A stretch of 64,000 nt of DNA, taken from positions 7,688,001-7,752,000 of the forward strand of contig CATNEN010000025.1 in assembly GCA_950097015.1 (NCBI GenBank), given 5' to 3'. The DNA comes from Macrostomum hystrix. Its lineage: Eukaryota; Animalia; Platyhelminthes. Position numbers and translations under genes: made by a program. The notes beneath the pieces are model-generated. The model made no database searches. It saw only the letters and a list, made by a program, of their open reading frames with translations, and was not told the DNA's origin. Positions 39,150 to 64,000 of the stretch are shown here, one piece after another; position 1 is the stretch's first letter; each line of letters begins with the position of its first letter.

Positions 39150-42100
39150 ATGGGCAGGCGAGCCGTTGGCACCACTAAACATGGCCGGTTCATGAACCCA
39201 ACTGACCAAGCAAGGAAGGAGGCTAGAAAGCGGGAGCTTAAGAAGAACAAAAAGCAGCGAATGCAGGCAAGTACCTATATGCCTTCCATTAACATATCTT
39301 CAGTTCGGGTATTTCATTCCCAGATCCCCAGTTTGGAGATTCCATTCCCAAATCCTCAGCTTTTGGAGTCCATTCCCAGATCCTCAGTTTGTGAAGTCCA
39401 TTCCCAGGTCATCAGTTTGAGTCCATTCACCGATCCTCAGTTTGGGGATTCCACTACCAGATCCTCAGTTTGGGGACTTTATTCCCAGATCCTCAGTTTG
39501 AGGATTTCATTCCCAGATCCTCAGTTTGTGGAATCCTTTCCCAGATCCTCAGTTTGAGTTCATTCCCAGATCCTCAGTTTGGGGATTCCACTACCAGATC
39601 CTCAGTTTGGGGACTTTATTCCCAGATCCTCAGTTTGAGTTCATTCCCAGATCCTCAGTTTGGGGATTCCACTACCAGATCCTCAGTTTGGGGATTCCAC
39701 TACCAGATCCCCAGTTTGTGGAATCCTTTCCCAGATCCTCAGTTTGAGTTCATTCCCAGATCCTCAGTTTGGGGATTCCACTACCAGATCCTCAGTTTGG
39801 GGATTCCACTACCAGATCCTCAGTTTGGGGATTCCACTACCAGATCCTCAGTTTGGGGATTCCACTACCAGATCCCCAGTTTGTGGAATCCTTTCCCAGA
39901 TCCTCAGTTTGAGTTCATTCCCAGATCCTCAGTTTGAGTTCATTCCCAGATCCTCAGTTTGAGTTCATTCCCAGATCCTCAGTTTGAGTTCATTCCCAGA
40001 TCCTCAGTTTGGGGATTCCACTACCAGATCCTCAGTTTGGGGATTCCACTACCAGATCCTCAGTTTGGGGATTCCACTACCAGATCCTCAGTTTGGGGAT
40101 TCCACTACCAGATCCCCAGTTTGTGGAGTCCATTCCCAGATCCCCAGTGTGGGGATTCCATTCCCAGATCCTCATTTTGTGGAGTCCATTCCCAGATCCT
40201 CAGTTTGGGGATTCCACTACCAGATCCTCAGTTTGGGGACTTTATTCCTAGATCCTCAGTTTGAGAATTTCATTCCCAGATCCTCAGTTTGTGGAATCCT
40301 TTCCCAGATCCTCAGTTTGAGTTCATTCCCAGATCCTCAGTTTGTGGAGGCCATTCCCAGATCCTCATTTTGTGGAGGCCATTCCCAGATCCTTAGTTTG
40401 GGGATTCCACTACCAGATCCTCAGTTTGGGGATTCCACTACCAGATCCCCAGTTTGTGGAATCCTTTCCCAGATCCTCAGTTTGAGTTCATTCCCAGATC
40501 CTCAGTTTGAGTTCATTCCCAGATCCTCAGTTTGAGTTCATTCCCAGATCCTCAGTTTGAGTTCATTCCCAGATCCTCAGTTTGAGTTCATTCCCAGATC
40601 CTCAGTTTGGGGATTCCACTACCAGATCCTCAGTTTGGGGATTCCACTACCAGATCCTCAGTTTGGGGATTCCACTACCAGATCCTCAGTTTGGGGATTC
40701 CACTACCAGATCCCCAGTTTGTGGAGTCCATTCCCAGATCCCCAGTGTGGGGATTCCATTCCCAGATCCTCATTTTGTGGAGTCCATTCCCAGATCCTCA
40801 GTTTGGGGATTCCACTACCAGATCCTCAGTTTGGGGACTTTATTCCTAGATCCTCAGTTTGAGAATTTCATTCCCAGATCCTCAGTTTGTGGAATCCTTT
40901 CCCAGATCCTCAGTTTGAGTTCATTCCCAGATCCTCAGTTTGTGGAGGCCATTCCCAGATCCTCATTTTGTGGAGGCCATTCCCAGATCCTTAGTTTGGG
41001 GATTCCACTACCAGATCCCCAGTTTGTGGATCCTTAGTTTTGCTAAATCGTTTCACATATTATCGAATGCTATATCAACACTTATCCTTGGCACAACATT
41101 CAATGTTTACCAGGTTCGCACCAGCGTATTGAAAGCTCGCCAACCAGATCAGATTCTCATTGAACTAGAAGAATACGACAAAATGGAATTGGACCCGTCC
41201 GCTGAAGGCGGCCTTGGCGGCGGCGGCGCCGTGGGTTTCAGCGATGGAGACCGGCTAGCGTTGCGAGTTATTCAAGAGAAGCGAAGAAAGTTATTAGAGA
41301 CTTATGATCGGATTCTGTCCATGGTGGTAAGTATGTTAGCCGAGTTACTCAGTCCTTCGAAAACTCACTGGCGGCGTGGCTTGGCTATTGTTTGAGGGCG
41401 GTCAATCCTCATCATTAGTAATCCTTAAGTAAGACCAGTAGACCACACTACTTGTCCCCCTGGGGAAAGACCGCGTGGGTCATAGGGATCTTTGTTCTAA
41501 GCATCCCAGTCACCAGGATGACCTTCATCGCCCGTCTGGAGCATCGGCGGCGAACATCGTGACCTTCAACAAAAGTAGCCGTCTCTGAGATGCCGATCGG
41601 GTGCTTTTGTTGATGATCTCGACGGTAAAACAAAATTGTTTTAGCCACTTGACACCCGATGAGAATCGTTGAATATCTCGACTGTATCTGTGAATTGTAG
41701 ATGCAAAAAAAAATCAAATGTGGGTATTAAAAGTACGCCCCTGGTCATTCTACTGATAATGCACTTAAAAAAACTGGGTAAATCCGGATCCTTCTCACGC
41801 AGCAACGCGAAAATGCGGATGACGCCGCCAAATTGTTAACCGCCCGACAAGAATACGAACAGCGGCGTCAGCAGCGGGAGCTATTCTACGAGGAGGTTCG
41901 CGCAGCCGAGAATGTTGATACGAGCAGCATTCCTCTGCCCGCATTACCGCCCGGCGCTATTCAGGCGCCCGGATTTCCGCCAGTGTTCCCCGGCGGCGCT
42001 ATTCCACCGCCATCCAGCGTGTTCGCAGCTGACGGCGGCCTACTGCCCGGCATACTAAAGCCTTCAACAGCTGCCGCAGCTCCGGTGCCAAGGAAGAAGC

Positions 42101-42849
42101 CCGATAGAAAGCCGGCCGGACCGCCGCCCGGACCTCCACCTGATTTGTCCGACTGCGAGGAGGAGGCGCCGCAGCCGCCGCCGGCAGCTCATCTGCAGCC
42201 GCAGAAGACTCTGAGATTTAGCGACGAGCCCGGACCTCCAGGCGAACGGCCAACGGCGGCGCCGATTGCTGTCGCTCCGCCTCAGCCTCCTTCGATTCAT
42301 CCACTTGCACCTGCTGCGGCGGCGGCTGCTGCTGCTGCTGCAGCCGCGGCTGCGGCCGCGGCTTCAATCAGCCATCGGCCACATCCCCAGATGCCGCCGC
42401 CGGCGCCGCTGCCTCTGCCGCCGCAGCCGGCCATAGCCCCGCATCCACCGTCTAGAGCCGCCTCAGCCGCCGACGGCGGTCACCAGCGACGCGGTCAGAC
42501 TAGCATCTCAGCCGCGCCTCAATTGAAGAATCTGATCGGCGATGCCACTAAATTAGTGCCGACCGCGCTCAGAATAAAACGAAACGCCCAACAGCAGCAA
42601 CAGCAGCAGCAACAGTTGCAAAAGCAGCAGCAGCCACAAGCTGTCGGCAATCAGCAGCGACTAATTGGCGTCGGTTCGTCCGCCGGCGTTGTCGGCGCAT
42701 CGTCAGCTGCCCTGACCAGCTCCGGCCTGTTGCCGGACCGCGGCGCCGACGCCTCCTCCGCCAGCCATCACCGGCTGCAGCAGATGAGCAGCAGCGCCAA
42801 GGATGACGCCTACGAGAAGTTCATGCAGGAGTTGCAGGGCCTGCTCTGA
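39150..42849 (+). CDS. WBP11: WW domain-binding protein 11 (spliceosome-associated), 458 aa
   Basis: Exons 39150-39266, 41114-41326 and 41803-42849. N-terminus MGRR..GRFMNPTDQARKEARKRELKKNKKQRM, Pro-rich middle, ISAAPQL..T.LVPTALRIKR and C-terminal KDDAYEKFMQELQGLL. AATAAA at 42982. Confidence 0.95.
39305..41030. repeat. Composite 25-29 bp array (CCCAGATCCTCAGTTT core) in WBP11 intron 1
   Basis: Several unit variants; ORFs recur identically at a 598-bp offset (39959/40557, 39984/40582, 40009/40607). Confidence 0.95.
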
Positions 42850-43139: not shown

Positions 43140-45189
43140 TAAGAGATCTAACCCCAGATCCCCATGCAGAGATTACTAATTCCAGATCCCCATGCAGAGA
43201 TGACTTATTCTAGATCCTCATGCAGAGATGACTAACTCTAGATCTCCATGCAGAGATTACCAACTCTAGATCCCCATGCAGAGATTACTAATTCCAGATC
43301 CCCATGCAGAGATGACTAATTCTAGATCCCCATGCAGAGATTACTAATTCCAGATCCCCATGCAGAGATGACTAATTCCAGATCCCCATGCAGAGATTAC
43401 TAATTCTAGATCCTTATGCAGAGATTACTAATTCCAGATCCTCATGCAGAGATGACTAATTCCAGATCCCCATGCAGAGATTACTAATTCCAGATCCCCA
43501 TGCAGAGATGACTAATTCCAGATCCCCATGCAGAGATGACTAATTCTAGATCCCCATGTAGAGATTACTAATTCCAGATCCCCATTCAGAGATTACTAAT
43601 TCCAGATCCCCATGCAGATATGACTAATTCTAGATCCCCATGTAGAGATTACTAATTCCAGATCCCCATTCAGAGATTACTAATTCCAGATCCCCATGCA
43701 GAGATTACTAATTCTAGATCCTCATGCAGAGATTACTAATTCTAGATCCTCATGCAGAGATGACTAATTCCAGATCCCCATGCAGAGATGACTAATTCTA
43801 GATCCTCATGCAGAGATGACTAATTCCAGATCCCCATGCAGAGATGACTAATTCTAGATCCCCATGCAGAGATGACTAATTCTAGATCCTCATGCAGAGA
43901 TGACTTATTCTAGATCCTCATGCAGAGATGACTAACTCTAGATCTCCATGCAGAGATTACCAACTCTAGATCCCCATGCAGAGATTACTAATTCCAGATC
44001 CCCATGCAGAGATGACTAATTCTAGATCCCCATGCAGAGATGACTAATTCTAGATCCCCATGCAGAGATGACTAATTCTAGATCCCCGTGTAGAGATTAC
44101 TAATTCCAGATCCCTATGCAGAGATGACTAATTCTAGATCCTCATGCAGAGATGACTAATTCCAGATCCCCATGCAGAGATGACTAATTCTAGATCCCCA
44201 TGCAGAGATGACTAATTCTAGATCCTCATGCAGAGATGACTTATTCTAGATCCTCATGCAGAGATGACTAACTCTAGATCTCCATGCAGAGATTACCAAC
44301 TCTAGATCCCCATGCAGAGATTACTAATTCCAGATCCCCATGCAGAGATGACTAATTCTAGATCCCCATGCAGAGATGACTAATTCTAGATCCCCATGCA
44401 GAGATGACTAATTCTAGATCCTCATGCAGAGATTACTAATTCCAGATCCCCATGCAGAGATTACTAATTCTAGATCTCCATGCAGAGATTACCAACTCTA
44501 GATCCCCATGCAGAGATTACTAATTCCAGATCCCCATGCAGAGATTACTAATTCCAGATCCCCATGCAGAGATTACTAATTCTAGATCCCCATGCAGAGA
44601 TGACTAATTCTAGATCCCCGTGTAGAGATTACTAATTCCAGATCCCTATGCAGAGATTACTAATTCCAGATCCCCATGCAGAGATGACTAATTCTAGATC
44701 CCCATGCAGAGATTACTAATTCCAGATCCCCATGCAGAGATGACTAATTCCAGATCCCCATGCAGAGATTACTAATTCTAGATCCTTATGCAGAGATTAC
44801 TAATTCCAGATCCTCATGCAGAGATGACTAATTCCAGATCCCCATGCAGAGATTACTAATTCCAGATCCCCATGCAGATATGACTAATTCTAGATCCCCA
44901 TGTAGAGATTACTAATTCCAGATCCCCATTCAGAGATTACTAATTCCAGATCCCCATGCAGAGATTACTAATTCTAGATCCTCATGCAGAGATGACTAAT
45001 TCTAGATCCTCATGCAGAGATGACTAATTCCAGATCCCCATGCAGAGATTACTAATTCCAGATCCCCATGCAGAGATGACTAATTCTAGATCCCCATGCA
45101 GAGATTACTAATTCCAGATCCCCATGCAGAGATTACTAATTCCAGATCCCCATGCAGAGATTACTAATTCTAGATCCTTATGCAGAGAT
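43140..45189. repeat. 28-bp satellite GAT(T/G)ACTAATTC(C/T)AGATCCCCATGCAGA, left part
   Basis: 28-bp period; interrupted at 45190 by the LTR element. Confidence 0.97.
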
Positions 45190-47579
45190 TGAAATAATGC
45201 GGGTCTTTTGCTAGCCGATGACCGCCCTCATGAAAGATAGGAGTGTGGAAAACGACGATAGAGTCGGAGGTCGATCGCTGCTGCCGCGAGTTGTCGCAGA
45301 GAGGGATGACGAAGGGAGGGATGAAGGGAGAGATGAAGGGAGAGATGAGGCGGTACAAAGGATGCAAGTGAGTGGTCCTATTGGCCTCAGGCTGGCCAGT
45401 CCCACCCAACCCATAGGCCACAGGCATGACTGCCGTGCCCACCCCAAGCAGTGCTCGAAACCGGCTAAAAGTCTAAATAGATGTCGGACTACCCGCAAGC
45501 GAATAGGACAGGGCTAGATAGCCTACTGTCATCAGTAGCATGTTCGTAACTGACTCCTAACTTTGGTAGCAGTGGTCGACTCGGCCTAGGCTCTTGTCTT
45601 AGAAATGCGGAAAGGCTATCGGCAAAGCGGATAATGATCGAAGGTAGCGCCACCACCCAATGCGCCTACGTTGCCACCGCAGACATTGGGAACTTGGGTC
45701 CCCGGAGCTCGCGGCTCCCAGTTTGTCACACAGATCTTAGACAAGCCGAAAAATAGAGCATTCTGTAACTTCCGTTTTAGACTAGGGTGAGAACCCCAGA
45801 ATGGATCGAGTCACGCCTCACAAGGGGATTCCTGAAACTGCGCTACAGTGGTCTAGAAAGGTGGTACTCCGAACCCGAATGAGAAATCCATAGCCAGAAT
45901 CCTACTCATGAGACATTAGACACATTCCTTACATTAGATTGCAGCCTACACATTAAATAACTAGCAAATCGATTCTGTGTGAGTTGAGGAGAACAGAGGC
46001 AGGAGAGATTAAGCTGAACACTGGCTGAGTGATTATGCAAGCAGGAAATTATTAGATCACACCCCTCGCTCCCATGGCGGCGGCAGCGAGAGGCGGGGAA
46101 CAGAAGGGAAACATTAATTGACAAGGGAGGTTGACACGCACTCCTTGATCTGCCAGAAAGAGAGGAAAAACCCGCCAAGGAATTCCCCCACCCCTAGCAG
46201 AGAAACACATGCTACGCTCCGCATATTACTCGCAAATCCCTAGCTCCTTATTACTCTCATGCGCGCTCACAGTTATCCTCCTGCCGCAGCTTTCAGCTAG
46301 GCATCACCAGAGCCCATCCCCCTAATAAGTTAGCCACTCATGATCGAGGGCTGTCTAACGATAAAATAAGAGAAAGTGAAATGCATAGTAAAAAGGATTT
46401 AAGTTGTTATTAAAATGCCCAATAAATTAGATAAGTTGTGAATTAATAGTTTTATTAGGCTAAATCAAATCCCTGCCCTTGCCCTTTTACCCACTAGCTA
46501 AATAGTGAATCCCTTAGGGATAGCAATAACAGTCCGCTGCGCGGGTTACTTATCTGAACACGCTGGTTGACAGGCTGCAGGCCGTCGATCTCGCGGGGGA
46601 GTACAAATGAACAGGAGAAAAGGTGAGGAATTGCTAAGTACAGTTGGCAAGGGGCCAGACTGCAGGGAGCTCAAGGCTCAATTTGGAGCGCACCTAAGGA
46701 GGTGGCTTGCGCTTAAGGGCACTAGCAGGTAGTTGCCTGCTGCTATGATCTGGAGCCTTAGGCTCAGGGACTAGGTGCTAGCCTAGAAGGGGGAGAGTCC
46801 ACGGACCGAGTTCCGGGACCGGACAAGGGAAAAAGGTTGTAAGGGCGGACGGTCCAAAGGGAGGTCCGGGGGAAGGTTAAAGGTGTCCTGGGAAGGTAGG
46901 TAGGTCGCCGGGAAAGGCTCCCGGAAAACAGGAAAAAGGTTGTCCTAGGGACAGCGCAGCGCGCTTTCTTAAATAGTCCTGCAGCTCCGCCAACCTCGCA
47001 TTCATCAAAATAACCCACATGCTCGCCGGCCTGTCAGCGAGGAATCGGGTCGGCATTATGCCACCCCAATTGCCCACTGAAGCGGCGGCGAGAATCGCCA
47101 GATGCCCCACTAGGAGCGTCTGCCGGCAGTCGGCCAATGATTGTGATCCCGCCGGGATATGGGAAGCGCAGGCGCCGACCTGCCTATAGTGTCGTTACAT
47201 GTATCTAAAGGGGGAAAGGTCATAATCGAGCCCCGGCTCGGGTTACAGTAAAGAAGAGGGACATGAAGAATTAAAGCTCACTCTAAACGCATGAGTGATC
47301 CCGACAATCTGATCGCGGCTTGGAGGGGAATTATGACCTAAACTAGTCCATACAGTATTGCTATTTCCGCGATCAGTCACTCCTACAGGGGACTAGACAG
47401 ATCCGAGACAAAGGGAATCGGCGGCTACTTAATTCACCTCCGCCCAATGTCTGGCCCTAAGATTAATGATGGTGTTCTGCGGCCAGCTGCTATGTGGGTC
47501 GCGATTATTGACTTGCTAAAAATTGGAAAAATTAGGCTGGCTCACAACCCCACTCGATTCCGAAGTACACTCCACATCA
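45190..47579 (-). repeat. 3' LTR (2390 bp)
   Basis: Matches 54060-56453; the only differences I found are four 1-bp homopolymer indels. Confidence 0.96.
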
Positions 47580-47600
47580 CACCGCCTTCGCTCACTTTCA
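47580..47600 (-). other. Polypurine tract
   Basis: The minus strand reads GAAAGTGAGCGAAGGCGGTG immediately before the TG of the 3' LTR. Confidence 0.7.
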
Positions 47601-48371
47601 CGTAAGGCACTTACGTGCTTACTGTCAGTAGTGGGGTGTGCCGCGAATCGAGGGGGCAAAAACTTACATTACCCTACTGTATACCGTAAAGAACCTTAAG
47701 AAGAAATCCGCTAGAGAAGAAATCCTAGGTCATCGTACGTAACAATACTGCTATAAATAGATTGTGTGCGAGAGTGTAAAGGTCGGCGCCCCTAGCGACT
47801 AAGGGATAGAGTCCTGAGGGGAGGTGGGTGCGCATTCCGGCTGAGTTAAGGTTGTTCTCGTTGCCAGGGGTGCCGTGTCCCGGCTCGCCTTCTCCTCCAG
47901 GTGGCTGCAGCTGTCCCCGTCTTTCCCTGCCCGGCTTGGTCTCGGTTGCGCAATCCCGGGAGGCTCCGGCCGTTTTCTCCTTAAGTCCGAGGGTCCGGCC
48001 GTGCTCTTCCCCAGGTGGCTCCGGGTTGGTTGGTCCGTTCGCGCCTTCCCGATTCCGTTGCCGGGCCGTGGTAGCCTCTGATTCGCCGCGCGCCCAGGTG
48101 TTTTCAGCTGGCCGGGCCCGAAAATTCTCGTCGGGCCGGTTGCCTAGCCGTTGCGCGCGGCCCAATCGGCGCTGCAGCTGGTCGCAGCTGGGGAAACCGC
48201 TGCTCAGGCCGCTTGTGATGCTGTTGCCGGCCGAGGTGTCTCCTCACCGAAAAGGTCAGGGCCCCAACAACTAAACTGTTACCATGAGCCCCCTAAACTG
48301 GTTCTGTCCGGAATTCCCACTTTGCTCCCATTGGCTGGCGGTTAGACCGCCACGTCTCCCTAAATTAGCCC

Positions 48372-48378
48372 TATAAAA
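48372..48378 (+). promoter_or_regulatory. TATA box (TATAAAA) upstream of the antisense spliced gene in the LTR element
   Basis: CCCTATAAAAGC lies about 200 bp upstream of the ATG at 48570. Confidence 0.5.
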
Positions 48379-48569
48379 GCAAACACTTGGCGCCCCATTA
48401 ACCTCAAGCCTCTTTATCTCTCCAAACAATCACCTATCCTACAGCAAGTTTTTCTAAATTCTCCTCGGCTAACTGCTAAGCTGCAAAAGTAACCTTCGAG
48501 AGTTGCCTGCAATCGCCACCTAGTCTGCGTCGCCCCGATCGCTTAATTACGTGCTCTGATTCTTGCACT

Positions 48570-49209
48570 ATGGCCCAGCCGCAGTCTGGAGAAGAAAGGT
48601 GAGTTATTTGACTTCTACTCGGCCCCCCAAGGCCGGTTATTAAGGATTATTGCGAGGGTTATTGCATAAGAATTAGAATAAACAGAGTCCCCCCCTACCC
48701 ACGGCACGCCATCTATCCCGAGAATCTGAAATTGACCCCGACCCCAAAACTGCGAAAAGGAACCCTTCCTGAGTTAATGATTGATTAAATTGAAAGTTAC
48801 TTAGTCTGCGATTGCCACCACTATTCTTCCATTCCTAATCGGACTACACCACTCTTCGCTTTCAGCAGCTACCCGCTCGGTGCTTTCGAGCCGGAGCCTC
48901 GGCGCCGGGCCAGCTCAGGCGGTCCCATCTCTGTCTCGTTTGTGATGAGTAAGTTGGCATTGACAAAACTACACTTCCCCCCCTCCACTCTGGATGTCAC
49001 CATTTGAAACTTCTGCCTGCAGAACGCCACTGCGCCTTACTAAACTACTCCTCCACCTTGTTTTCGCAGACATAGACGTGCCCGAAGGCCGGGAGGCCGA
49101 CCTGGCGGCCATCGTTTCTAGCCTCATTAGAGGCCCGCTGGGCGTGGCCCTGGCTGTCGGAGTGGCCTTCACTGCTCTTGCGCTGCTGACCCTGATCTAC
49201 TTGATGTGA
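48570..49209 (+). CDS. Putative three-exon 83-aa tail-anchored membrane protein, antisense within the LTR element
   Basis: Exons 48570-48598 (AG|GTGAGT), 48866-48948 (TTTCAG| … |GTAAGT) and 49070-49209 (TTTTCGCAG|), phases 2 and 1, 252 nt with no internal stop. C-terminal hydrophobic helix LGVALAVGVAFTALALLTLIYLM. Confidence 0.62.
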
Positions 49210-50520
49210 CACTGTCCTACTATGCCTACTGACTCGCCGTGCCAGGCTTACTGACTGACCTAACTGCATGCATTTCTGCCATCTCTTATAATGCCACATA
49301 ATACATTACAACATAAACGCCACCATTTGAAACGTAAAACGAAAATTTGCTATCTGTGTCCGACTTCCTTCCTAGATGAAACATTACTGCTCAAATTTTA
49401 CGACTGCCTAGTAACAAAAAACTAACTGATAGACTGTCAATGAGTTTTTAAAACGTCTGGAACCTTAATTCCTACGATTTATTACTATTCTACCCTTCCA
49501 GGTACCTAGATTCGGGCTCCCAGCTGCTAGCTTCTGGCTCCCAAATAATGTTTCTTTTTGTCTTTTCTGACCCTAACAAAAGAAAAATTATCATTTTGAA
49601 ATCTGTCGCTCATTGAAACAGCCAGATTGTCTCCCCTAGAACTTGAATACCTGACCCTACCGGCTTCTTGATTTACAACCGCCCACTCTTTAAACAAACA
49701 TTAAGAAAAACTCCCGAAACATACCACCCCGCTCACTTTAGCGGGTTGGTATACCCCCTAAATAGAAGCCGGCATAGCTAAACTCCCGAAACCAAGCATA
49801 GAGAACATGTAAGATAAGCAAGTTTGCGAAAAGTAGGTGCGAACCCTAGTTTGCAGCAGTTATTACGAAAATATTTCATGCGAAAATTCGTACTAGGGGA
49901 GTTTCACCCCACTAAGTATGTTTTTGGATTTTGATTAGTTTATATGAGTTTTTAAGAGGGTTTGGCGCCGAGATGGCCCTTTTTGATTTGAAACCGCCTT
50001 CCCTCCCTTAAAGAAACATAGAATTTCCCATGGCATACCACCCCGCTCACTTTAGCGGGTTGGTGTCCCTCCTAATTTAGAAGTTGTCCTAAATTGAACT
50101 CCCACAGACCCACCAATATGAACAAGATAAGGCAGAGGTGCCATGCATGATGTGGTGCGATTAAAGTAAAATGCTCTTTAAGAAAAGAAGGTGCATACCC
50201 TAGTTTGCTACAATTAGATAAGCATCTTATGTAAAAAGTATCAGGGGAATTTCACCCCACTATGTGTATTTTTGTGGTTTTGGCTAAAATTATAAGAATT
50301 TTTTTTGTGTGAGATTTTTGGCCAAGGCGGCTTTAGATGAAAAGGGAAAACATGCACAATAGGGGAAAAGGAGCGAAAAGTGCAGAGTGCGCATTATTAT
50401 TAAAGGGGGAGGAAAAAGGAAGGGGACAAAGGGGGAACAGGGGACAGGGGCCTAACAGATGGTGGTCCTGTTCCTACTATTCTACGGTCACTACCTCGGT
50501 TGACCCTACCTTGCGCTTTC

Positions 50521-51102
50521 CTATTCTTCGGCCGCCTCCTGATGGGCGTACTTTCCACCGGTCCCCTCGCTAGCTTCTTCGCCTTCCATCTCTCTCACCA
50601 TGCGGCCGAGCGTGCTGTCCCCGGGCGGTGGCTCTTCGACGATGCGATGTCCGTGGAGCCACTCACGCCAATCCGGGTCTGCCGCTGACCGCAGGGTGAT
50701 CTCTGGCATCCCGATCCGGCGCATGACCAGCTGGTGCTCCAACTCTTCCTGTCCTGGGATCCTCTTGGCTTGCAGCCAGGACGCGAGCTCATCGGGTATG
50801 GTAATGCTCCAATCCGCTGGCGGGCTGTACTCCATCCACCGCAGGTTCCAAGGGAGGTTTGCCTCGTCTTCTCCCCTAGGCGGCAGAGGGTCCCGCTCTT
50901 CGCACCACGCCTGGGCCAGCCACCTAGATTCTGCCAGCTGGCAGGCAAGGGCGAGGTCAACGCCTGCTTGGGCCGCTCGTCCTATCATGGGTAACAGCCA
51001 CAGGCGGACCATCAGCCAGGTCCTCTTCCCTGCCAGTTCGCGGCGATAATCCGTGGCGGCCACTTCTAGCCACCACGCCAGGACGGTGCCAAAGCTTGCC
51101 AT
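50521..51102 (-). CDS. Unknown Trp-rich ORF (193 aa) at the position normally held by pol
   Basis: Intact ORF from ATG 51102 (gacATGg) with 12 Trp. Same strand as gag and preceded by a polypyrimidine tract. No RT, RNase H or integrase motifs recognised. Confidence 0.6.
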   Translation of the reverse strand: MASFGTVLAWWLEVAATDYRRELAGKRTWLMVRLWLLPMIGRAAQAGVDLALACQLAESRWLAQAWCEERDPLPPRGEDEANLPWNLRWMEYSPPADWSITIPDELASWLQAKRIPGQEELEHQLVMRRIGMPEITLRSAADPDWREWLHGHRIVEEPPPGDSTLGRMVREMEGEEASEGTGGKYAHQEAAEE

Positions 51103-51254
51103 GTCTGAGACTAGTCCCTTCGTTCTTAAACTAGAATACAACTTTCCTGCTTGGCTTTCCCAGCCCTTACTTAAATAAGTCGACGACCAGAGGAGGGGGT
51201 GGGGTGGGCGAGGAAAGAAAATGGTGATTGACCCTAGGTCACGGTGACCCTCAT

Positions 51255-51804
51255 TTAAAATTTAGCCTTCCGCCTGAGTGAAAAGGGGAGAAATTGACGA
51301 TATATGATTAAGTGGCGCGAGTCAAAGTCAACGATGGCATGATGATGAGCCAACCAGGAGGCACCGAGCAGGGGAGAGCAGTCGCCCTCAACCACTAAGA
51401 ACACGGTGTCCAGCGCTTCGGTGCCAACCTGTAATTTGACCCTGACCTGCGCCTGTGCAACAATGGGTGTTCCATTATAAGCAAAAAGAGAAAATTGCGG
51501 GGGTTCGAATGGGTAGTGTTGAAAGATTGATGACAACGAGTCCGGGAGCACATTTACCATAGACCCTGTGTCGATGAGGAGGTCTAGGGGTTGTCCCTTC
51601 CACTTCCAAGGCGACCCACACCTCACTAAGCTGCTCAGAGCGATTTGGGCGGGTTCGCACTCGGGTGGGGACTCGGCCGAGTGCATTCACTCGGACTTCT
51701 CGGAGGTCGGAGGCGGCGGCTGCCGCCGCTCCGACTGTCGAGCTGCGGGCTGGGTCTCGGGGCCGTGGGACTGCCTCCAATTGGCGGCCCCGTTCCCATT
51801 TCCC
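51255..51804 (-). CDS. pro: Retroviral-type aspartic protease, predicted -1 frameshift product of gag, with one apparent 1-bp indel near 51597
   Basis: LDLLIDTGSMVNVL catalytic motif and SPLLGASWL C-terminal motif. The N-terminal strand VWVALEVEG sits in the adjacent frame and joins QPLDLL across a GGG run. Stop at 51255 directly after the domain. Confidence 0.85.
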
Positions 51805-52747
51805 TTCGCCACCTCACGATTCGCTCCGCCAGCAGCCCCGTGTTCTACACGCTTTCGGGTGCCACTGATGCCCATTTGGGTTGTGGGCAGAGAGGGGGAA
51901 TGGAGTTGGGCTTGGCTTCCCGCAGCTGCTGAGAAATCTCGGCTAGCTGCTGGGTCACCTTGGTTAATTCTGCCAGCAGCCCGTGCTGCGGCTCTGGCTG
52001 GTCCGGTTTCGTCATCTGAACCTGTCCTGATTTGGCGCACTCGCCGGCGAGGGTCCCGCTCCACCGCCATTTCATGCGCCTGCGTGGCAGCACGCAGCTC
52101 GGCGGCGGCGGCCTCAGCCGTGGCAAATTCCATCCGCATGATGGGTGCCAACACCTCGGGTGGGGCCACTATCCCCTCCATAAAAGAGGCCAGCAAAGCG
52201 CGCTCGAAGTGCACACCGTGGCCATTGGGGGTGGCCTGCAGGGCCGCTGTTCTGAGTCTATCGGCGAAGGCGGGGTACGTCTCGTCCCGTCCTGCTTCAA
52301 ATTACGCCCGCTCAGCAGCCGGGCGTAGGGGGTGCAGGCGCCACTCAGGGCCTCGGTCAGATCCTGCACGAATCTAAGGTAGGTCACCCGGCGGGGCAAC
52401 CCTAGCGCTTCGGTGAGGGGCTCGCCACTCAGGTGAGCGAGGAGGGTGAGGATTTTCTCCTCCTCGGATTCGACACCCTCCGCCTCCAGCTTCAGGTTAA
52501 ATCGGCGAAGCCAGAGGGGGAAGGAATCCTTTTCGGGATCGAGGGGTTCAATAGAAACTTTGACCCGGTGGTTCCGGGGTCGTCGCACCTCTAGCCGCTC
52601 TAAAAGCAGCGCCAGGCGCTCCACGGGGTCGGCTTGCTGTGCTGCAGCAGCCGCTGGGGGTTCGGCGCGCGCCGCAGCTGCGGCGCGGCCTCTGGGTGGG
52701 CGGTTGACTCCAACCACTTCCACCACCTCACCCTCCTGGTCGGACAT
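51687..52747 (-). CDS. gag: Gag-like capsid protein, split by one apparent 1-bp indel near 52285
   Basis: DSFPLWLRRFNLKLE…KILTLLAHLSGEPL…LKQ/DETYPAFADRLR…LLASFMEGI is a retrotransposon-gag-like pattern. ORFs 52169..52747 and 51687..52214 overlap at a GGG run. No CCHC knuckle. Confidence 0.8.
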
Positions 52748-54039
52748 TTTCGGCCAAAGAGGAATGAGGATTTTGCGAATGAAAAAGAGGGGGGGTCTGT
52801 CGCTAATGCAACAATGGGGGAAAAGGAGAAGAGGAAAAACAGATCACGACTGGAGATCGTGCGGGGGGGAAAGAAAATGAGCCTGAGCTGTCAAGTCCAG
52901 CCCTGATTAATGATGCGGCGAATTCCCTACTCCTAGAGAGCAACCCTACCGCAAAAAGGATCAAAGATCAGTGAGAGAGAAAAGGGCCCAGGGCCCTGGC
53001 TAGCTTTGCTTCCAGCCTTGGCTACTGACAAACTGTTTTGCGCGCACTCAAGGTTTGGGACATAGAAGTCTAGGTTTTAACTTAGCACTCGTTCTGCAAC
53101 CCTATAGCGGACTGTTGCACTATAGGTACGGCGGGGTCAGTACTACTGCAAGCTTGCGCCTGCAACAGCCTATCACCCTACCTTGGAAAGTACACGCCTC
53201 AATAAGATACTCAGAGAAGGGATAATCCCCGACTCGTTCAGGGAGTCATCGGTTCCCGGCTGCATTGCCGGGGGCCCCCCCTCGCGATTAACGAGACTGG
53301 GAAGCCCAGGGGGGATATACCTGGGATCTCGCTCGGATAGGAGTCCATGGCTAAAGCCTGGCTACCCCATTTAGAAAACCCCTCAAAGAATCTCTTAGAA
53401 AAACGTGCCGACCGAATTCTAGCCCATACTTGAAGTAGGCAGTTTCGAGAGGCGGGCACGGGGGTCGCTAGACCTCCCTCAGAAGTCCCACCTCCCTAAC
53501 TGTTCCCCACCAAAGTCAGACTTGGCCAAAGTTATGTGACACTTTCAAAATCAGGTACACGTAAGCAGGCCCGCAAGCTGCCCAAGAGAACCAATCCCCG
53601 GTGCTCGGCGAGTCATCGATTCCCGGCTGCATTGCCGGGGGCTCCCCTCGCTCGGTTAGAAGGCCGAACGGCGTTGCCCGGTCCCTCGTTAAGAATGGCC
53701 CCTCCCAGATCAATCACGCGGGAAAACCCCACAGACAGTGCCCGACTCCTGCAGCAGCCACTAACCCGAAGACACTCTAGCATGAAGTCCGCTCACACAG
53801 CCTACTCATAGTAGAAAGTCACTAATCAGAATTTTGGAAACTCTAACAAAAGCCTAAATTAAATTGAAACCAAATTGCAACTGTTCGGAAATTTATTGAC
53901 AGTCACTAGAACTGAGATAAGATTTAGGCATACGGAAGATGAAATCTAGAAGAAGCCCTTACGGCTAACTACCACAGAAATCTGCGGCGCTAAACTAACA
54001 ATTGAAAAAAATTCAGGTTCGTTTCGCGCCCTTTCTAAA

Positions 54040-54058
54040 TCCCACCTCGATGCCACCA
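54040..54058 (-). other. Primer binding site, tRNA-Leu-like
   Basis: TGGTGGCATCGAGGTGGGA lies 1 nt after the 5' LTR. It is complementary to a 3' end …UCCCACC..UGCCACCA resembling metazoan tRNA-Leu; the tRNA identity is an inference. Confidence 0.8.
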
Positions 54059-54059
54059 T

Positions 54060-56453
54060 TGAAATAATGCGGGTCTTTTGCTAGCCGATGACCGCCCTCA
54101 TGAAAGATAGGAGTGTGGAAAACGACGATAGAGTCGGAGGTCGATCGCTGCTGCCGCGAGTTGTCGCAGAGAGGGATGACGAAGGGAGGGATGAAGGGAG
54201 AGATGAAGGGAGAGATGAGGCGGTACAAAGGATGCAAGTGAGTGGTCCTATTGGCCTCAGGCTGGCCAGTCCCACCCAACCCATAGGCCACAGGCATGAC
54301 TGCCGTGCCCCCACCCAAGCAGTGCTCGAAACCGGCTAAAAGTCTAAATAGATGTCGGACTACCCGCAAGCGAATAGGACAGGGCTAGATAGCCTACTGT
54401 CATCAGTAGCATGTTCGTAACTGACTCCTAACTTTGGTAGCAGTGGTCGACTCGGCCTAGGCTCTTGTCTTAGAAATGCGGAAAGGCTATCGGCAAAGCG
54501 GATAATGATCGAAGGTAGCGCCACCACCCAATGCGCCTACGTTGCCACCGCAGACATTTGGGAACTTGGGTCCCCGGAGCTCGCGGCTCCCAGTTTGTCA
54601 CACAGATCTTAGACAAGCCGAAAAATAGAGCATTCTGTAACTTCCGTTTTAGACTAGGGTGAGAACCCCAGAATGGATCGAGTCACGCCTCACAAGGGGA
54701 TTCCTGAAACTGCGCTACAGTGGTCTAGAAAGGTGGTACTCCGAACCCGAATGAGAAATCCATAGCCAGAATCCTACTCATGAGACATTAGACACATTCC
54801 TTACATTAGATTGCAGCCTACACATTAAATAACTAGCAAATCGATTCTGTGTGAGTTGAGGAGAACAGAGGCAGGAGAGATTAAGCTGAACACTGGCTGA
54901 GTGATTATGCAAGCAGGAAATTATTAGATCACACCCCTCGCTCCCATGGCGGCGGCAGCGAGAGGCGGGGAACAGAAGGGAAACATTAATTGACAAGGGA
55001 GGTTGACACGCACTCCTTGATCTGCCAGAAAGAGAGGAAAAACCCGCCAAGGAATTCCCCCACCCCTAGCAGAGAAACACATGCTACGCTCCGCATATTA
55101 CTCGCAAATCCCTAGCTCCTTATTACTCTCATGCGCGCTCACAGTTATCCTCCTGCCGCAGCTTTCAGCTAGGCATCACCAGAGCCCATCCCCCTAATAA
55201 GTTAGCCACTCATGATCGAGGGCTGTCTAACGATAAAATAAGAGAAAGTGAAATGCATAGTAAAAAGGATTTAAGTTGTTATTAAAATGCCCAATAAATT
55301 AGATAAGTTGTGAATTAATAGTTTTATTAGGCTAAATCAAATCCCTGCCCTTGCCCTTTTACCCACTAGCTAAATAGTGAATCCCTTAGGGATAGCAATA
55401 ACAGTCCGCTGCGCGGGTTACTTATCTGAACACGCTGGTTGACAGGCTGCAGGCCGTCGATCTCGCGGGGGGAGTACAAATGAACAGGAGAAAAGGTGAG
55501 GAATTGCTAAGTACAGTTGGCAAGGGGCCAGACTGCAGGGAGCTCAAGGCTCAATTTGGAGCGCACCTAAGGAGGTGGCTTGCGCTTAAGGGCACTAGCA
55601 GGTAGTTGCCTGCTGCTATGATCTGGAGCCTTAGGCTCAGGGACTAGGTGCTAGCCTAGAAGGGGGAGAGTCCACGGACCGAGTTCCGGGACCGGACAAG
55701 GGAAAAAGGTTGTAAGGGCGGACGGTCCAAAGGGAGGTCCGGGGGAAGGTTAAAGGTGTCCTGGGAAGGTAGGTAGGTCGCCGGGAAAGGCTCCCGGAAA
55801 ACAGGAAAAAGGTTGTCCTAGGGACAGCGCAGCGCGCTTTCCTTAAATAGTCCTGCAGCTCCGCCAACCTCGCATTCATCAAAATAACCCACATGCTCGC
55901 CGGCCTGTCAGCGAGGAATCGGGTCGGCATTATGCCACCCCAATTGCCCACTGAAGCGGCGGCGAGAATCGCCAGATGCCCCACTAGGAGCGTCTGCCGG
56001 CAGTCGGCCAATGATTGTGATCCCGCCGGGATATGGGAAGCGCAGGCGCCGACCTGCCTATAGTGTCGTTACATGTATCTAAAGGGGGAAAGGTCATAAT
56101 CGAGCCCCGGCTCGGGTTACAGTAAAGAAGAGGGACATGAAGAATTAAAGCTCACTCTAAACGCATGAGTGATCCCGACAATCTGATCGCGGCTTGGAGG
56201 GGAATTATGACCTAAACTAGTCCATACAGTATTGCTATTTCCGCGATCAGTCACTCCTACAGGGGACTAGACAGATCCGAGACAAAGGGAATCGGCGGCT
56301 ACTTAATTCACCTCCGCCCAATGTCTGGCCCTAAGATTAATGATGGTGTTCTGCGGCCAGCTGCTATGTGGGTCGCGATTATTGACTTGCTAAAAATTGG
56401 AAAAATTAGGCTGGCTCACAACCCCACTCGATTCCGAAGTACACTCCACATCA
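54060..56453 (-). repeat. 5' LTR (2394 bp)
   Basis: Direct repeat of 45190-47579, adjacent to the PBS. Confidence 0.96.
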
Positions 56454-58860
56454 AGATTACTAATTCCAGATCCTCATGCAGAGATGACTAATTCTAGATC
56501 CCCATGCAGAGATTACTAATTCTAGATCCTCATGCAGAGATGACTAATTCCAGATCCCAATGCAGAGATGACTAATTCTAGATCCCCATGCAGAGATGAC
56601 TAATTCTAGATCCCCATGCAGAGATGACTAATTCTAGATCCCCATGCAGAGATGACTAATTCTAGATCCCCATGCAGAGATGACTAATTCTAGATCCCCA
56701 TGCAGAGATTACTAATTCCAGATCCCCATGCAGAGATTACTAATTCTAGATCCCCATGCAGAGATTACTAATTCTAGATCCCCATGTAGAGATTACTAAT
56801 TCTAGATCCCCATGCAGAGATTACTAATTCTAGATCCCCATGCAGAGATTACTAATTCTAGATCCTCATGCAGAGATTACTAATTCCAGATCCCCATGCA
56901 GAGATTACTAATTCCAGATCCCCATGCAGAGATGACTAATTCTAGATCCCCATGCAGAGATGACTAATTCTAGATCCCCATGCAGAGATGACTAATTCTA
57001 GATCCCCGTGTAGAGATTACTAATTCCAGATCCCTATGCAGAGATTACTAATTCCAGATCCCCATGCAGAGATGACTAATTCCAGATCCCCATGCAGAGA
57101 TTACTAATTCCAGATCCCCATGCAGAGATTACTAACTCTAGATCCCCATGCAGAGATTACTAATTCTAGATCCCCATGCAGAGATTACTAATTCCAGATC
57201 CTCATGCAGAGATTACTAATTCCAGATCCCCATGCAGAGATTACTAATTCCAGATCCCCATGCAGAGATTACTAATTCCAGATCCCCATGCAGAGATTAC
57301 TAATTCTAGATCCTCATGCAGAGATGACTAATTCTAGATCCCCATGCAGAGATTACTAATTCCAGATCCACATGCAGAGATGACTAATTCTAGATCCCCA
57401 TGCAGAGATTACTAATTCCAGATCCCCATGCAGAGATTACTAATTCCAGATCCCCATGCAGAGATGACTAATTCCAGATCCCCATGCAGAGATTACTAAT
57501 TCTAGATCCTCATGCAGAGATGACTAATTCTAGATCCTCATGCAGAGATGACTAATTCCAGATCCCCATGCAGAGATGACTAATTCTAGATCCCCATGCA
57601 GAGATGACTAATTCTAGATCCTCATTCAGAGATTACTAATTCCAGATCCCCATGCAGAGATTACTAATTCTAGATCCCCATGTAGAGATTACTAATTCCA
57701 GATCCCCATTCAGAGATTACTAATTCTAGATCCCCATTCAGAGATTACTAATTCCAGATCCCCATGCAGAGATTACTAATTCCAGATCCCCATGTAGAGA
57801 TTACTAATTCTAGATCCCCATGCAGAGATTACTAATTCCAGATCCCCATGCAGAGATTACTAATTCCAGATCCCCATGCAGAGATTACTAATTCCAGATC
57901 CCCATGCAGAGATTACTAATTCCAGATCCCCATGCAGAGATTACTAATTCCAGATCCCCATGCAGAGATTACTAATTCCAGATCCCCATGCAGAGATTGC
58001 TAATTCCAGATCCCCATGCAGAGATTACTAATTCCAGATCCCCATGTAGAGATTACTAATTCCAGATCCCCATGCAGAGATTGCTAATTCCAGATCCCCA
58101 TGCAGAGATTGCTAATTCCAGATCCCCATGTAGAGATTACTAATTCTAGATCCCCATGTAGAGATTACTAATTCTAGATCCTCATGCAGAGATTACTAAT
58201 TCTAGATCCTCATGCAGAGATTACTAATTCCAGATCCCCATGTAGAGATTACTAATTCCAGATCCCCATGCAGAGATTACTAATTCTAGATCCCCATGCA
58301 GAGATTACTAATTCTAGATCCCCATGCAGCGATGACTAATTCCACATCCCCATGCAGAGATGACTAATTCCAGATCCCCATGCAGAGATGACTAATTCCA
58401 CATCCCCATGCAGAGATGACTAATTCCAGATCCCCATGCAGAGATGACTAATTCCAGATCCCCATGCAGAGATGACTAATTCCAGATCCCCATGCAGAGA
58501 TGACTAATTCTAGATCCCCATGCAGAGATTACTAATTCTAGATCCCCATTCAGAGATGACTAATTCTAGATCCCCATGCAGAGATTACTAATTCCAGATC
58601 CCCATGCAGAGATTACTAATTCCAGATCCTCATGCAGAGAGGACTAATTCCAGATCCCCATGTAGAGATTACTAATTCTAGATCTCCATTCTGAGATTAC
58701 TAATTCCAGATCCCCATTTAGAGATTAATCCCATATCCTCATGCAGAGATTAATCCCAGATCCTCATGCAGAGATTAATCCCAGATCCTCATGCAGAGAT
58801 TAATCCCAGATCTTCATGCAGAGATTAATCCCAGATCCTCATCCAGCAATTACTAATCTC
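56454..58860. repeat. 28-bp satellite, right part
   Basis: Resumes in register after the TSD; degenerates to shorter units near 58730-58860. Confidence 0.97.
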
Positions 58861-59128
58861 TGATCCTTATGCAGAGGATACTCACATGAGATTAAGGTTT
58901 CGGGTTAAAACAAAATTTTCATTCTTGGAAACCAAGCAAAAGTTTTGCTACGAGCAGTTTCAAAGCAAATAAATTTATACGCGTTATACGAGCTAATAAC
59001 GTTAAAAACGCTGAGTAAGTAGCTTACTTTAAATAAATTATCTTTTTAAAACTCCAGAGGTCTTTAGAGTCGGATAGTATTTTCAAATTGTCGCAATTTT
59101 CTTAGAATTAGATCCAGGACATTTGAGG

Positions 59129-59994
59129 TCAGTTCTGCAGCCCGCACACCATATTCGCTGGCAGAGCGGCGTCTATCTGCTTGGGATACGGCAGATTCAA
59201 ATTTTTCATGATTTGAACAAACTCGCTCTTGGACTTTGTCAGGCGTGGATTAAACTGCTTCTCTTCTGACACGGAGGTGACTGTCTGACCTGTGTAGTCA
59301 TGCGCAGGATACAGCAAATAGTGCTCAGGCAGGCTGAGTATCTGGCTGTGAACGGAATCGTACAGGCGCTCCGGGGAGCCCTGTTGAAAGTCCGTCCGGC
59401 CGCAGTCGCGGATCAGCAGGGCATCGCCTGTGAATGCCATGCCGTGACTGTGCAGTACGTAGGTTAGGCAGCCGTCCGTGTGACCCGGTGTGGAGCGAAC
59501 CTCCAACTGCAGCTTGCCAAACTCGATCTGCAATTATTGGTCCCGAGTTCGAGCTCTACACTGCTTCAATAGGAATCCCACAGTTGCCATCCTAGTCAGT
59601 TGCTAGGGGAACTGGATTCTACAGATGGAATCCCACATTTCCCATCCCAGATTCGCATTCTCACGTTATCCCCATGTTTGACTCGCACATCTGCCCTGGC
59701 TTGGCTGACCTCCGCAATGACACTCTGGCAGCCTGGCAGGAAGCCTTTGATCTTGCCGCTGCCCGTCACGTGATCCGCGTGTACATGCGTATTGATGACG
59801 TACTTTAGAGTCAAGCCGAGCTGATCAACAATTTTTAGATCGCGATCCGCAGTCTCAATCACTGGATCGATTAGCACAGCCTCCTTGGTAGCCTCGCAAG
59901 CCAATAGATAGGTATAGGTGCAGCTGGTGTCCTCAAACAGTTGGCGAAACACCAAACTTGATGCCAGCTCCTCAGCCAAAAATCTCTTGTACAT
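59129..59994 (-). CDS. ETHE1: Persulfide dioxygenase (metallo-beta-lactamase fold), 242 aa
   Basis: Exons 59994-59665 and 59527-59129, phase 0. Motifs [63 protein letters not shown]. Confidence 0.96.
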
Positions 59995-60479
59995 GTTTTC
60001 GTCTTTGTTGCTTTATTTTTCAACAAACAAAAGTAAACACAGCTGTAGGTCACTGGCTTAGAAGTGGGTGTGGTTTTGCCGCGGACTATGGAGTGTGTAT
60101 AACTATATTTATGTTTGTTTGTCGTGACATCAAAGAGCAATCTGTACAGAGCCTGTACACTCACATGGAGGGCTACAAAAGATTCGCAGGTGGGGTTGTT
60201 CTACATAGTTGATGCGCTCATTTGTGATGCTGAGGGTGGACGCACTTGTTTACGGCACACTGTACGCGCCACTTTGTACACACACGAATGCACACGGGCG
60301 CCCGTCAATTAGAAATTTTCTATCCATTTTCATCCTTTTTGCTAAATTTACTTTTCCACTCACCCTATGATTATATTGTTCTCAGCTAACTGACAGCAAT
60401 ACAAATAACCCAAAACAATAGGTTCACTGGAAGGATGACTCTTACCGCAATCTTGTCATTATATCGACTCATGTTTGTT

Positions 60480-61195
60480 CTATCGACTCAAGTGTCTTTC
60501 TATCGACTAAAGTGTCTTTCTATCGACTTAAGTGTCATTCTATCGACTTAAGTGTCATTCTACCGACTCAAGTGTCATTCTATCGACTCAAGTGTCATTT
60601 CTATCGACTAAAGTGTCATTTTATCGACTTAAGTGTCATTCTACCGACTCAAGTGTCATTCTATCGACTCAAGTGTCATTTCTATCGACTAAAGTGTCAT
60701 TTTATCGACTTAAGTGTCATTCTATCGACTCAAGTGTCATTCTATCGACTCAAATGTCATTTCTATCGACTCAAGTGTCATTCTATCGACTCAAATGTCT
60801 TCTATCGACTTAAGTGTCATTCTACCGACTCAAGTGTCATTCTATCGACTCAAGTGTCATTTCTATCGACTAAAGTGTCATTTTATCGACTTAAGTGTCA
60901 TTTCTATCTACTCAAATGTCATTTCTATCGACTCAAGTGTCATTTTATCGACTTAAGTGTCATTCTATCGACTTAAGTGTCATTCTACCGACTCAAGTGT
61001 CATTCTATCGACTCAAGTGTCATTTCTATCGACTCAAGTGTCATTTTATCGACTTAAGTGTCATTCTATCGACTCAAATGTCATTTCTATCGACTCAAGT
61101 ATCATTATATCGACTCAAATGTCATTACATCGACTCAAACGTCATTATATCGACACAAATGTCATTATATCGACACAAATGTAATTGTATCGACC
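60480..61195. repeat. 20/21-bp minisatellite GTGTCATT(T)CTATCGACT(C/T)AA
   Basis: Alternating 20- and 21-bp units. Confidence 0.94.
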
Positions 61196-61554: not shown

Positions 61555-62660
61555 TAGCAGCCTCAGCCAGTTTTTTTAGCGTCCAGAACACCCGAGCAAT
61601 GTTGAATTTGGACATCGGACGTCCTCTCATAACAGCGTACTCCGGCCACGCTCCGGTGCCCTGTCCTTTCCATTATCTGCTGCTCATCCACCCCCGGCCT
61701 GGTAGAGGCGAGTGGCGCAGGTGGTGCGCAGAGAATGATTGGACTTTTTTCTAACTAGGCCCGCCTCTGCGCAGATGTTGGACAAGAAGGATGCGAGAGT
61801 GTTCTTGCCGACTGGCCGGTTGCAAAACCATACACTGGTTGGATTCTTCATTGGTTGCAGGTAGAACCGTGTGCTTCCGGCAGGCCTTACACTCAGAAAC
61901 TGTTCGAACAGGCGAACATGACACCTCTCGGGTTTCGCCTCATTCTCAAAGTGGACTACTTCCTTTGGAAAAATCATTGAGCCACGGAGGCCACCAGCAT
62001 TGGTCTTTGATACAGTCTCTTTGTAGACAATGTAACGCTCAGCATTTCTCTCCTGAATACTGAATTGCCCAATGTCAAGATTGCTGTGCTCAGTCTCACT
62101 GATCACGCTTGCGCTTCTCTTGAACAAGCCAATGCCATCTCTAGTGGAAATCTTCATAGCAGCGTCCAGACTCTGAGTCAACAGTGGAAACTGCACTCCA
62201 CGGAAGAAATCTACAGGTCGATGAATGCAAACCACCTGTTGTATACCAGCAATGATCGAGACCAGAGTTGTGGGTGGATACTTTTTTCCGTCGGCGCGCC
62301 TTACCTCGTATATAAAAGCAGACCGTTGCTTATTAAGCTCTTCGTCGGCCAGATCATGTACGGCGATGCAATCCATTCCGCGCGTCTGTCTCCAATTGTT
62401 AAATAACTTTTCGGCCCATTTGTTCCTGCTCGTGGTAGAACTTGGTAGACTTGGTAGAATCGTTCAAGGCTTTCACAGCTGCTATGTCTATTGGAGCTTG
62501 GCGAACGTCGTCATCAGATGACGATCGATGCACGTTGACTTCGTTTCCCTTTCGTAGCTCGGCGAGGGCGTAAGGATTTTGCATATCAGCTCCACTATCT
62601 AATAGCGCATCCAAATCCTCAGTTCGTAGAACGTTGGGTTCGTAGTCTTCAACAAAATCT
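61555..62660 (-). pseudogene. Decayed Crypton-type (DUF3504-like) tyrosine recombinase
   Basis: KWAEKLFNNW, FIYEVRRADGKKYPP.TL, ETVSKTNAGGL, RCHVRLF, NHSLRTTCATRLY, and in the next frame ERTGHRS..VRCY (H-x-x-R, H and Y catalytic motifs). Two frameshifts and an apparent internal deletion. Confidence 0.8.
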
Positions 62661-63496: not shown

Positions 63497-63524
63497 GTAA
63501 GGCTCATGAGCAGCCTGTTATTAG

Positions 63525-64000
63525 TCATGATCATGGTGATGAGTATTCTGGGTCATTTAGTGATGATCATGGTGATCAGTATTCTGGGTCATTTAGTGAT
63601 GATCATGGTGATGAGTATTCTGGGTCATTTAGTGATGATCATGGTGATGAGTATTCTGGGTCATTTAGTGATGATCATGGTGATCAGTATTCTGGGTCAT
63701 TTAGTGATGATCATGGTGATAAGTATTCTGGGTCATTTAGTGATGATCATGGTGATGAGTATTCTGGGTCATTTAGTGATGATCATGGTGATGAGTATTC
63801 TGGGTCATTTAGTGATGATCATGGTGATGAGTATTCTGGGTCATTTAGTGATTATCATGGTGATCAGTATTCTGGGTCATTTAGTGATTATCATGGTGAT
63901 CAGTATTCTGGGTCATTTAGTGATGATCATGGTGATGAGTATTCTGGGTCATTTAGTCATGACCATGGTGATGAGTATTCTGGGTCATTTAGTGATGATC
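63525..64000. repeat. 36-bp intronic minisatellite GATGATCATGGTGAT(G/C)AGTATTCTGGGTCATTTAGT
   Basis: 36-bp period starting about 30 bp after the 63496 donor; runs off the window. Confidence 0.95.

Follow-up and report, generated by a model that had tools for sequence, protein, structure and literature searches.

How a retrotransposon that encodes neither a polymerase nor an integrase could come to lie as a recent insertion in an animal genome is the question raised by a long terminal repeat (LTR) element of the flatworm Macrostomum hystrix. The element occupies the minus strand of a 64,000-nucleotide stretch of contig CATNEN010000025.1 (GenBank assembly GCA_950097015.1, forward-strand positions 7,688,001 to 7,752,000), which is referred to below as the window and within which positions are counted from the first letter. 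The most probable answer, to which we give a rough probability of 0.6, is that the locus holds one recent copy of a non-autonomous Ty3/Gypsy-type LTR retrotransposon that has kept its cis signals, a gag-like gene and a protease gene, and in which the block for reverse transcriptase (RT), RNase H and integrase is absent. The original prediction for this locus had pictured an element that supplies its own capsid and protease and carries accessory genes of its own in the place of pol.

Comparison of the 45-57 kb interval with itself gave a single long direct repeat pair, the LTRs, whose bounds were set after removing two chance-shared bases from the pair. In the orientation of the element the termini start with TGA and finish with TCA, and both sides are flanked by AGAT (45186-45189 and the first 4 bases from 56454). 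The element lies within a 28-bp satellite, and phase analysis of this satellite shows that the left part ends after unit position 4 and that the right part resumes at position 0. The target site duplication (TSD) is thus exactly 4 bases long, and this proof by satellite phase is cleaner than a bare 4-mer match. By its terminal repeats, TG..CA ends and 4-bp TSD, the element is an LTR retrotransposon, and the intact ends and TSD described in the original prediction are in place. The LTRs were also said to be essentially identical, and over 2.39 kb they are separated by a single substitution and four indels of one base each (4 indels in 4.8 kb, or about 0.8 per kb). The insertion is recent.

Candidates for the priming signals named in the original prediction lie at the junctions between the LTRs and the internal region. 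A TGG-type 18-mer occupies the position of the primer binding site (PBS) and is labelled PBS-like for this position and the TGG start, and a polypurine-like tract (16 purines of 20) adjoins the other LTR. Both are oriented as the protease coding strand (minus). No tRNA was found in the window, and a literature search returned no published mention of the 18-mer. The LTRs yielded no protein-family match, and Rfam had no hit that reached its gathering scores, with a single row at chance level when the threshold was E ≤ 1. The string formed by the LTR end and the PBS was also followed in metagenomes, where its 15 loci proved to be a single conserved bacterial coding motif with neither a tRNA beneath it nor a retroelement protein, and it was set aside.

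These junctions bear on the possibility that the element is an assembly artefact, i.e., a chimera or collapse of different repeats between two real LTRs, such that pol would be missing from the assembly only. The satellite-rich surroundings are hard to assemble, and the LTR differences, one-base indels in four cases out of five, have the pattern typical of consensus errors in long reads, as would be expected under this explanation. However, both junctions between LTR and flank, together with the TSD, are in exact satellite phase, the PBS and the purine tract lie exactly at the LTR-internal junctions, and the interior contains no run of N and no abrupt duplicated junction. We therefore regard an artefact as very unlikely.

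The absence of pol was assessed by two approaches. All stop-to-stop pieces of at least 30 aa on both strands of 47560-54080 (n = 124) were scanned with Pfam at E ≤ 1. No match to RVT, RNase H, rve or other integrase families was obtained among these pieces, the two protease models being the only retroelement families found, and no envelope or fusion-protein family was detected in any frame of the internal region. A tblastn search (E ≤ 10) with 74 protein relatives of the protease, including those that carry RT, RNase H and integrase, recovered the protease as its only match, with nothing better than E ~0.8 in the 3.7 kb past the protease and nothing better than E ~0.06 elsewhere in the window. 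Neither RT nor integrase was found in the rest of the window, nor any further copy or fragment of the element. The two approaches agree with each other and with the claim that RT, RNase H and integrase are missing, and the profile search of all frames, which had been proposed as a check on that claim, left no RT or integrase remnants in the internal region. Pol is absent, and the element had no enzymes of its own with which to make or integrate cDNA. Because this copy encodes neither polymerase nor integrase, its enzymes would have come from another element, a supply in trans that we infer from the established life cycle of LTR retroelements.

A different explanation for these negative results would be that the element is autonomous and that its polymerase and integrase have diverged beyond recognition, being hidden, e.g., inside the orphan open reading frame (ORF) downstream of the protease, here called ORFx, or elsewhere in the 3.7 kb. 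The gag-like gene and ORFx are both orphans, which would fit a divergent lineage. Yet the protease is still detectable although it is much less conserved, whereas RT and integrase are the most conserved of retroelement domains, and the only long frame past the protease (193 aa, or 246 aa from stop to stop) is far too short for RT plus integrase. This explanation is close to refuted.

The affiliation of the element is indicated by its protease, which carries a DTGS motif in an uninterrupted frame that ends at 51255, where the original prediction had it stop. It matches Pfam gag-asp_proteas at E 2.7e-4, under the gathering score, a match that is weak when taken alone. When 1.84 billion representative proteins were searched exhaustively with phmmer, 74 hits at E ≤ 1e-3 were obtained, the closest at E 2.5e-7 and 35% identity. 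Most of these relatives are short fragments with uninformative architecture, and those that carry a name come from mayfly and tick. Ten relatives, long ones included, were scanned with Pfam and are mostly Ty3/Gypsy-type gag-pro or pol proteins, with zinc knuckles, Retrotrans_gag or PNMA, RVT_1, RT_RNaseH_2, rve and Integrase_p58_C among their domains. Against 73 relatives, 17 of the 19 well-conserved columns are kept in the protease, including the active-site Asp and Gly and the Gly of the C-terminal motif, all invariant. A sequence search of the PDB gave chance-level rows only (retroviral-like aspartic protease 1 at E 0.2-0.3), and the metagenome scan gave no relative. A Ty3/Gypsy-type placement drawn from the protease alone, with relatives at no more than 35% identity, is weak but consistent.

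The ATG of the protease directly follows the UGA of the gag-like gene, in the same frame. The 100 nt from the gag UGA onward (51590-51689, minus strand) have a somewhat more stable fold than shuffles (minimum free energy -37.9 kcal/mol, z -2.1), with a stem-rich structure that begins 17 nt downstream, a fold that would be compatible with read-through or re-initiation and proves nothing.

The gene upstream of the protease is more difficult to identify. It has no Pfam family at E ≤ 1, no CCHC motif or zinc knuckle, and no recognisable Retrotrans_gag or PNMA-like capsid domain. A word-index search of a protein database with one gag piece found no sequence relative, and PDB sequence searches with both pieces returned chance-level rows only. 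A single-sequence AlphaFold model of a gag piece has a helical core at low confidence (mean pLDDT 48), and Foldseek with this model had no hit at E ≤ 0.001. Its rows at E ~3-10 included chains of MOAP1, Arc and retroviral capsid (CA), which were not counted as evidence. We call the gene gag-like for its position, the frame that it has in common with the protease and its predicted helical character. The statement that the element "supplies its own capsid" was too strong, since the gag-like ORF of this copy carries one frameshift, which may be an assembly indel.

This frameshift, of which the original prediction made no mention, is the only break in the three genes, as the gag-like gene has no internal stops and both the protease and ORFx are unbroken. 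At the indel density of the LTRs (~0.8 per kb), one indel would be expected in the 1.06-kb gag, and the single frameshift would fit either a real change after insertion or a long-read consensus error. It is very likely that all three genes were open at the time of insertion. A programmed gag-pro frameshift between the two gag frames was considered and is less likely; the coding-like pattern is taken up by the second frame directly where it leaves the first, and the first is predicted to end in an unstructured tail.

The 3.7 kb that follow the protease in the place of pol were said to contain a 193-aa ORF, a spliced antisense gene, duplicated hairpins and a GC-rich open frame. The first of these exists as the intact ORFx. 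It sits in an open frame of 246 codons, a length equalled by 2 of 1000 dinucleotide shuffles of the region, and its GC content at the three codon positions (0.69/0.50/0.72) resembles that of gag (0.71/0.52/0.70); the stretch just upstream of its ATG has flat codon-position GC. These properties suggest that ORFx is probably coding. It has no homolog in the word-index protein search and chance-level rows only in the PDB sequence search, and its single-sequence AlphaFold model is of low confidence (pLDDT 40). The description "own accessory genes" was thus overstated, since this one ORF has statistical support but no other ORF does and none has a homolog; no other open frame past the protease exceeds 172 aa.

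The duplicated hairpins are also present, as a two-unit duplication of about 350 bp in which each unit bears a hairpin with a 13-bp stem. The GC-rich stretch at ~47.7-48.3 kb found no support as a gene, being open on both strands over a length that shuffled sequences easily reach. The spliced antisense gene likewise found no support, as no plus-strand piece had a family match (pieces were searched singly, with no joined-exon search). The internal region showed no similarity to the LTR, and exact-product look-ups of four ORFs of the window gave no match. A nested insertion was considered as the source of the 3.7 kb and rejected, since the block has neither inverted termini, nor an internal LTR-like repeat, nor a protein domain of transposable elements. 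Ahead of the starts of gag and ORFx there are short direct repeats, which were considered as a shared expression signal and attributed to chance, as they were not significant in the self-comparison.

The composition of this block could also indicate a one-off defective copy, in which pol gave way to unrelated sequence, either by a template switch within one round of reverse transcription or by a rearrangement of the inserted copy, and which has never been mobilised since. Only one copy is seen in the window, no relatives were found in the collections searched, gag carries a frameshift and most of the 3.7 kb is without coding signal, all of which this scenario would accommodate. On the other hand, gag, protease and ORFx are open apart from one indel-type break of the kind that the LTR indel density predicts, and the junctions at the PBS and the purine tract are clean. 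The internal units have diverged by 7-25%, far beyond the divergence of the LTRs, and compared with the insertion the replacement sequence is therefore old. Any rearrangement later than the insertion would need to fall within the time of a single LTR substitution. A one-off origin is possible, if unlikely.

Our preferred reading, a recent copy of a non-autonomous gag-protease element, would account for the locus as follows. The element would retain what is needed in cis, namely the LTRs, the PBS, the purine tract and a long leader, and its protease would be made by read-through or re-initiation past the gag UGA. The place of the pol block would have been taken by 3.7 kb of unrelated sequence with the orphan ORFx and the duplicated hairpin-bearing unit, and the cDNA of the present copy would have been made and inserted by the enzymes of another element. 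The anatomy, the recent date of the insertion and the lack of pol are shown by the sequence; we infer trans-complementation, membership in a multi-copy family and any function of ORFx, and the element may, in the words of the original prediction, be an "active parasite of an autonomous Gypsy family".

Several observations weigh against this reading. The gag-like gene is frameshifted in the present copy and has no homolog, and its low-confidence model (pLDDT 48) has no significant structural match; the Pfam score of the protease falls short of the gathering threshold, and 2 of its 19 conserved columns are not kept. The element is a single copy, with no second copy or fragment in the window, and neither a pol-bearing partner nor a close relative was found among the 1.84 billion representatives, in the word-index protein searches or in the metagenome scan, none of which includes the host genome. 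The internal region may represent a recombinant that arose only once, or a chimera of the assembly. What speaks for a lineage are the three ORFs, open but for one indel at noise level, the clean ends of the replaced block, and internal duplications far older than the insertion.

A stronger version would hold that the lineage replicates as gag-pro-ORFx, with ORFx as a true gene under selection. The element would then be an animal "satellite" retroelement in which a novel protein of the element has taken the place of the polymerase module, and whose RT and integrase are borrowed from a helper family that is unrelated or has been lost. We consider this version unlikely. The duplicated hairpin units might in that case serve as cis signals, for example in packaging.

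The coordinates of the element and of the features around it are given in Table 1. Two convergent host genes, one WBP11-like and the other of the metallo-beta-lactamase fold, flank the satellite with its element. A piece with the Wbp11 domain (E 1.5e-10) was found in the 31.2-43.1 kb interval, and a large P-, A- and Q-rich open frame with poly-A and poly-Q runs and no family match (41782-42846, plus strand) ends ~300 bp before the satellite. By inspection, this frame reads like the C-terminal exon of the WBP11-like gene. Upstream of this last exon is a second 28-bp satellite (39284-41031), whose period and ...CCAGATCC.CA... core are common with the satellite that hosts the element, and the two arrays may be related.

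Table 1. Positions of the element, its parts and neighbouring features in the window.
Feature	Position	Strand	Remarks
LTR element, whole	45190-56453	-	11,264 bp; internal region 6.5 kb
3' LTR	45190-47579	-	2390 bp; TG..CA termini; no protein-family match
Polypurine-like tract	47580-47599	-	adjoins 3' LTR; purines 16/20
3' non-coding part of internal region	47600-49719	-	GC-rich stretch inside; no family match
Two-unit tandem duplication	49720-50282	-	unit ~350 bp; spacing ~314-354 bp; 75-93% identity
ORFx, intact, 193 aa	50521-51102	-	no homologs; open frame beyond chance; GC at codon positions 1/2/3 like gag
Retropepsin (aspartic protease) ORF, 143 aa	51255-51686	-	uninterrupted; DTGS
gag-like gene, ~350 codons	51687-52747	-	ATG at 52747; ends in UGA; one frameshift
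Leader, long (1.3 kb)	52748-54040	-	diverged ~60 bp duplicate at 53224-53285 and 53593-53651
PBS-like 18-mer	54041-54058	-	begins TGG, one base past 5' LTR
5' LTR	54060-56453	-	2394 bp
Host 28-bp satellite, left part	43156-45189		TRF
Host 28-bp satellite, right part	56454-58876		TRF
Minisatellite arrays, some	2-4786, 17180-18407, 19120-20026, 21877-25249, 27654-30238, 33824-36085, 39284-41031, 60454-61194, 63521-64000		
Anoctamin (TMEM16) exons	25561-25953, 30724-31182	+	plus weaker piece further on
Metallo-beta-lactamase-fold gene, two exons	59132-59533, 59599-60012	-	
DUF3504, QRICH1 and phage-integrase-like ORF	61687-62463	-	

Minisatellites are common throughout the window, which contains ~25 distinct arrays with units of 13-46 bp and lengths of up to 4.8 kb, mostly with 85-98% matches and several strongly strand-skewed. 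Some of these arrays lie inside introns of the anoctamin gene, which is recognised by Pfam Anoctamin in six open pieces (best E 1.7e-41) and by Anoct_dimer in three. A further host gene is suggested by single open pieces, located neither in the arrays nor in the element, with matches to cNMP_binding (E 8.4e-9) and to the IQ motif (E 1.4e-3). The ORF at 61687-62463 has 45-63% identity to metagenome and SRA fragments and 32-44% identity to its best named relatives, which are molluscan (Haliotis asinina and Lottia gigantea). It would encode a tyrosine recombinase of the Crypton type or a protein derived from such a recombinase. The contig as such resembles invertebrate animal DNA and not human DNA.

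If the element proves to belong to a multi-copy family, it would be a clear example, from an animal, of the "semi-autonomous" type of LTR element, with its own capsid and protease and a borrowed polymerase and integrase, a category documented mostly in plants. Such a family would also offer a natural case for how these elements match their helper, and for whether the orphan ORF does anything. As a single copy it matters mainly for correct repeat annotation, since pipelines that require RT would miss or misclassify the element.

Among known kinds of defective elements, large retrotransposon derivatives (LARDs) exceed 4 kb, have a non-coding internal region and are presumed to be mobilised in trans. 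The present element resembles them in being large and pol-less, with long LTRs, a putative PBS and a putative polypurine tract (PPT). LARDs are non-coding by definition, however, and an element with a gag-like gene, an intact protease ORF and an intact ORFx does not fit this class because it is coding. Replication-defective transducing retroviruses, to which the original prediction likened the element, retain cis signals and part of gag, have pol replaced by foreign sequence and need a helper. The element is similar in its retained cis signals and gag-like gene, its replaced pol and its presumed need for a helper. Unlike in these viruses, no host origin is shown for the replacement sequence, which resembles nothing else in the window and has no family match; env is absent as well, as is any sign of an infectious cycle, and the protease groups with Ty3/Gypsy-type retrotransposons. 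An ORF resembling the env of endogenous retroviruses or errantiviruses was likewise not found, no envelope or fusion-protein family being matched by any internal-region frame.

The closest comparison is with the non-autonomous LTR retrotransposons that retain GAG/PROT domains ("TR-GAG"-like or "semi-autonomous"), which have been described from plants including sugar beet, Coffea and Arabidopsis (PMC13570524). In sugar beet, 28-29 families retain only GAG/PROT domains, many of them without a traceable autonomous partner (PMC13570524). As in these elements, the LTRs and a putative PBS and PPT are kept, gag is kept together with the protease (as in the sugar-beet families), RT, RNase H and integrase are absent, and the sizes overlap. 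The present element differs in its animal host, its unusually long LTRs (2.39 kb), an orphan gag without Retrotrans_gag or zinc-knuckle signatures and an extra, probably coding ORF in the place of pol, and it is known from one copy. It nevertheless fits the GAG/PROT-retaining class, with a gag that is identified by position and carries one frameshift. Pol-less LTR elements without an identifiable master copy have also been reported from an animal, the mosquito Culex quinquefasciatus (PMC3286476), and share with the present element an animal host, LTRs with TSD, a PBS (putative in the present element), the lack of pol and internal repeats. Unlike the Culex elements, which have no coding capacity and contain long tandem arrays (PMC3286476), the element described here keeps gag-pro and has a two-unit duplication only. 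The rarity implied by the original prediction was therefore overstated, given the GAG/PROT-only families of plants (PMC13570524) and the pol-less LTR elements of animals (PMC3286476). The element is an orphan of an already described kind, distinguished by its animal host, its 2.4-kb LTRs, its unrecognisable gag and its extra ORF.

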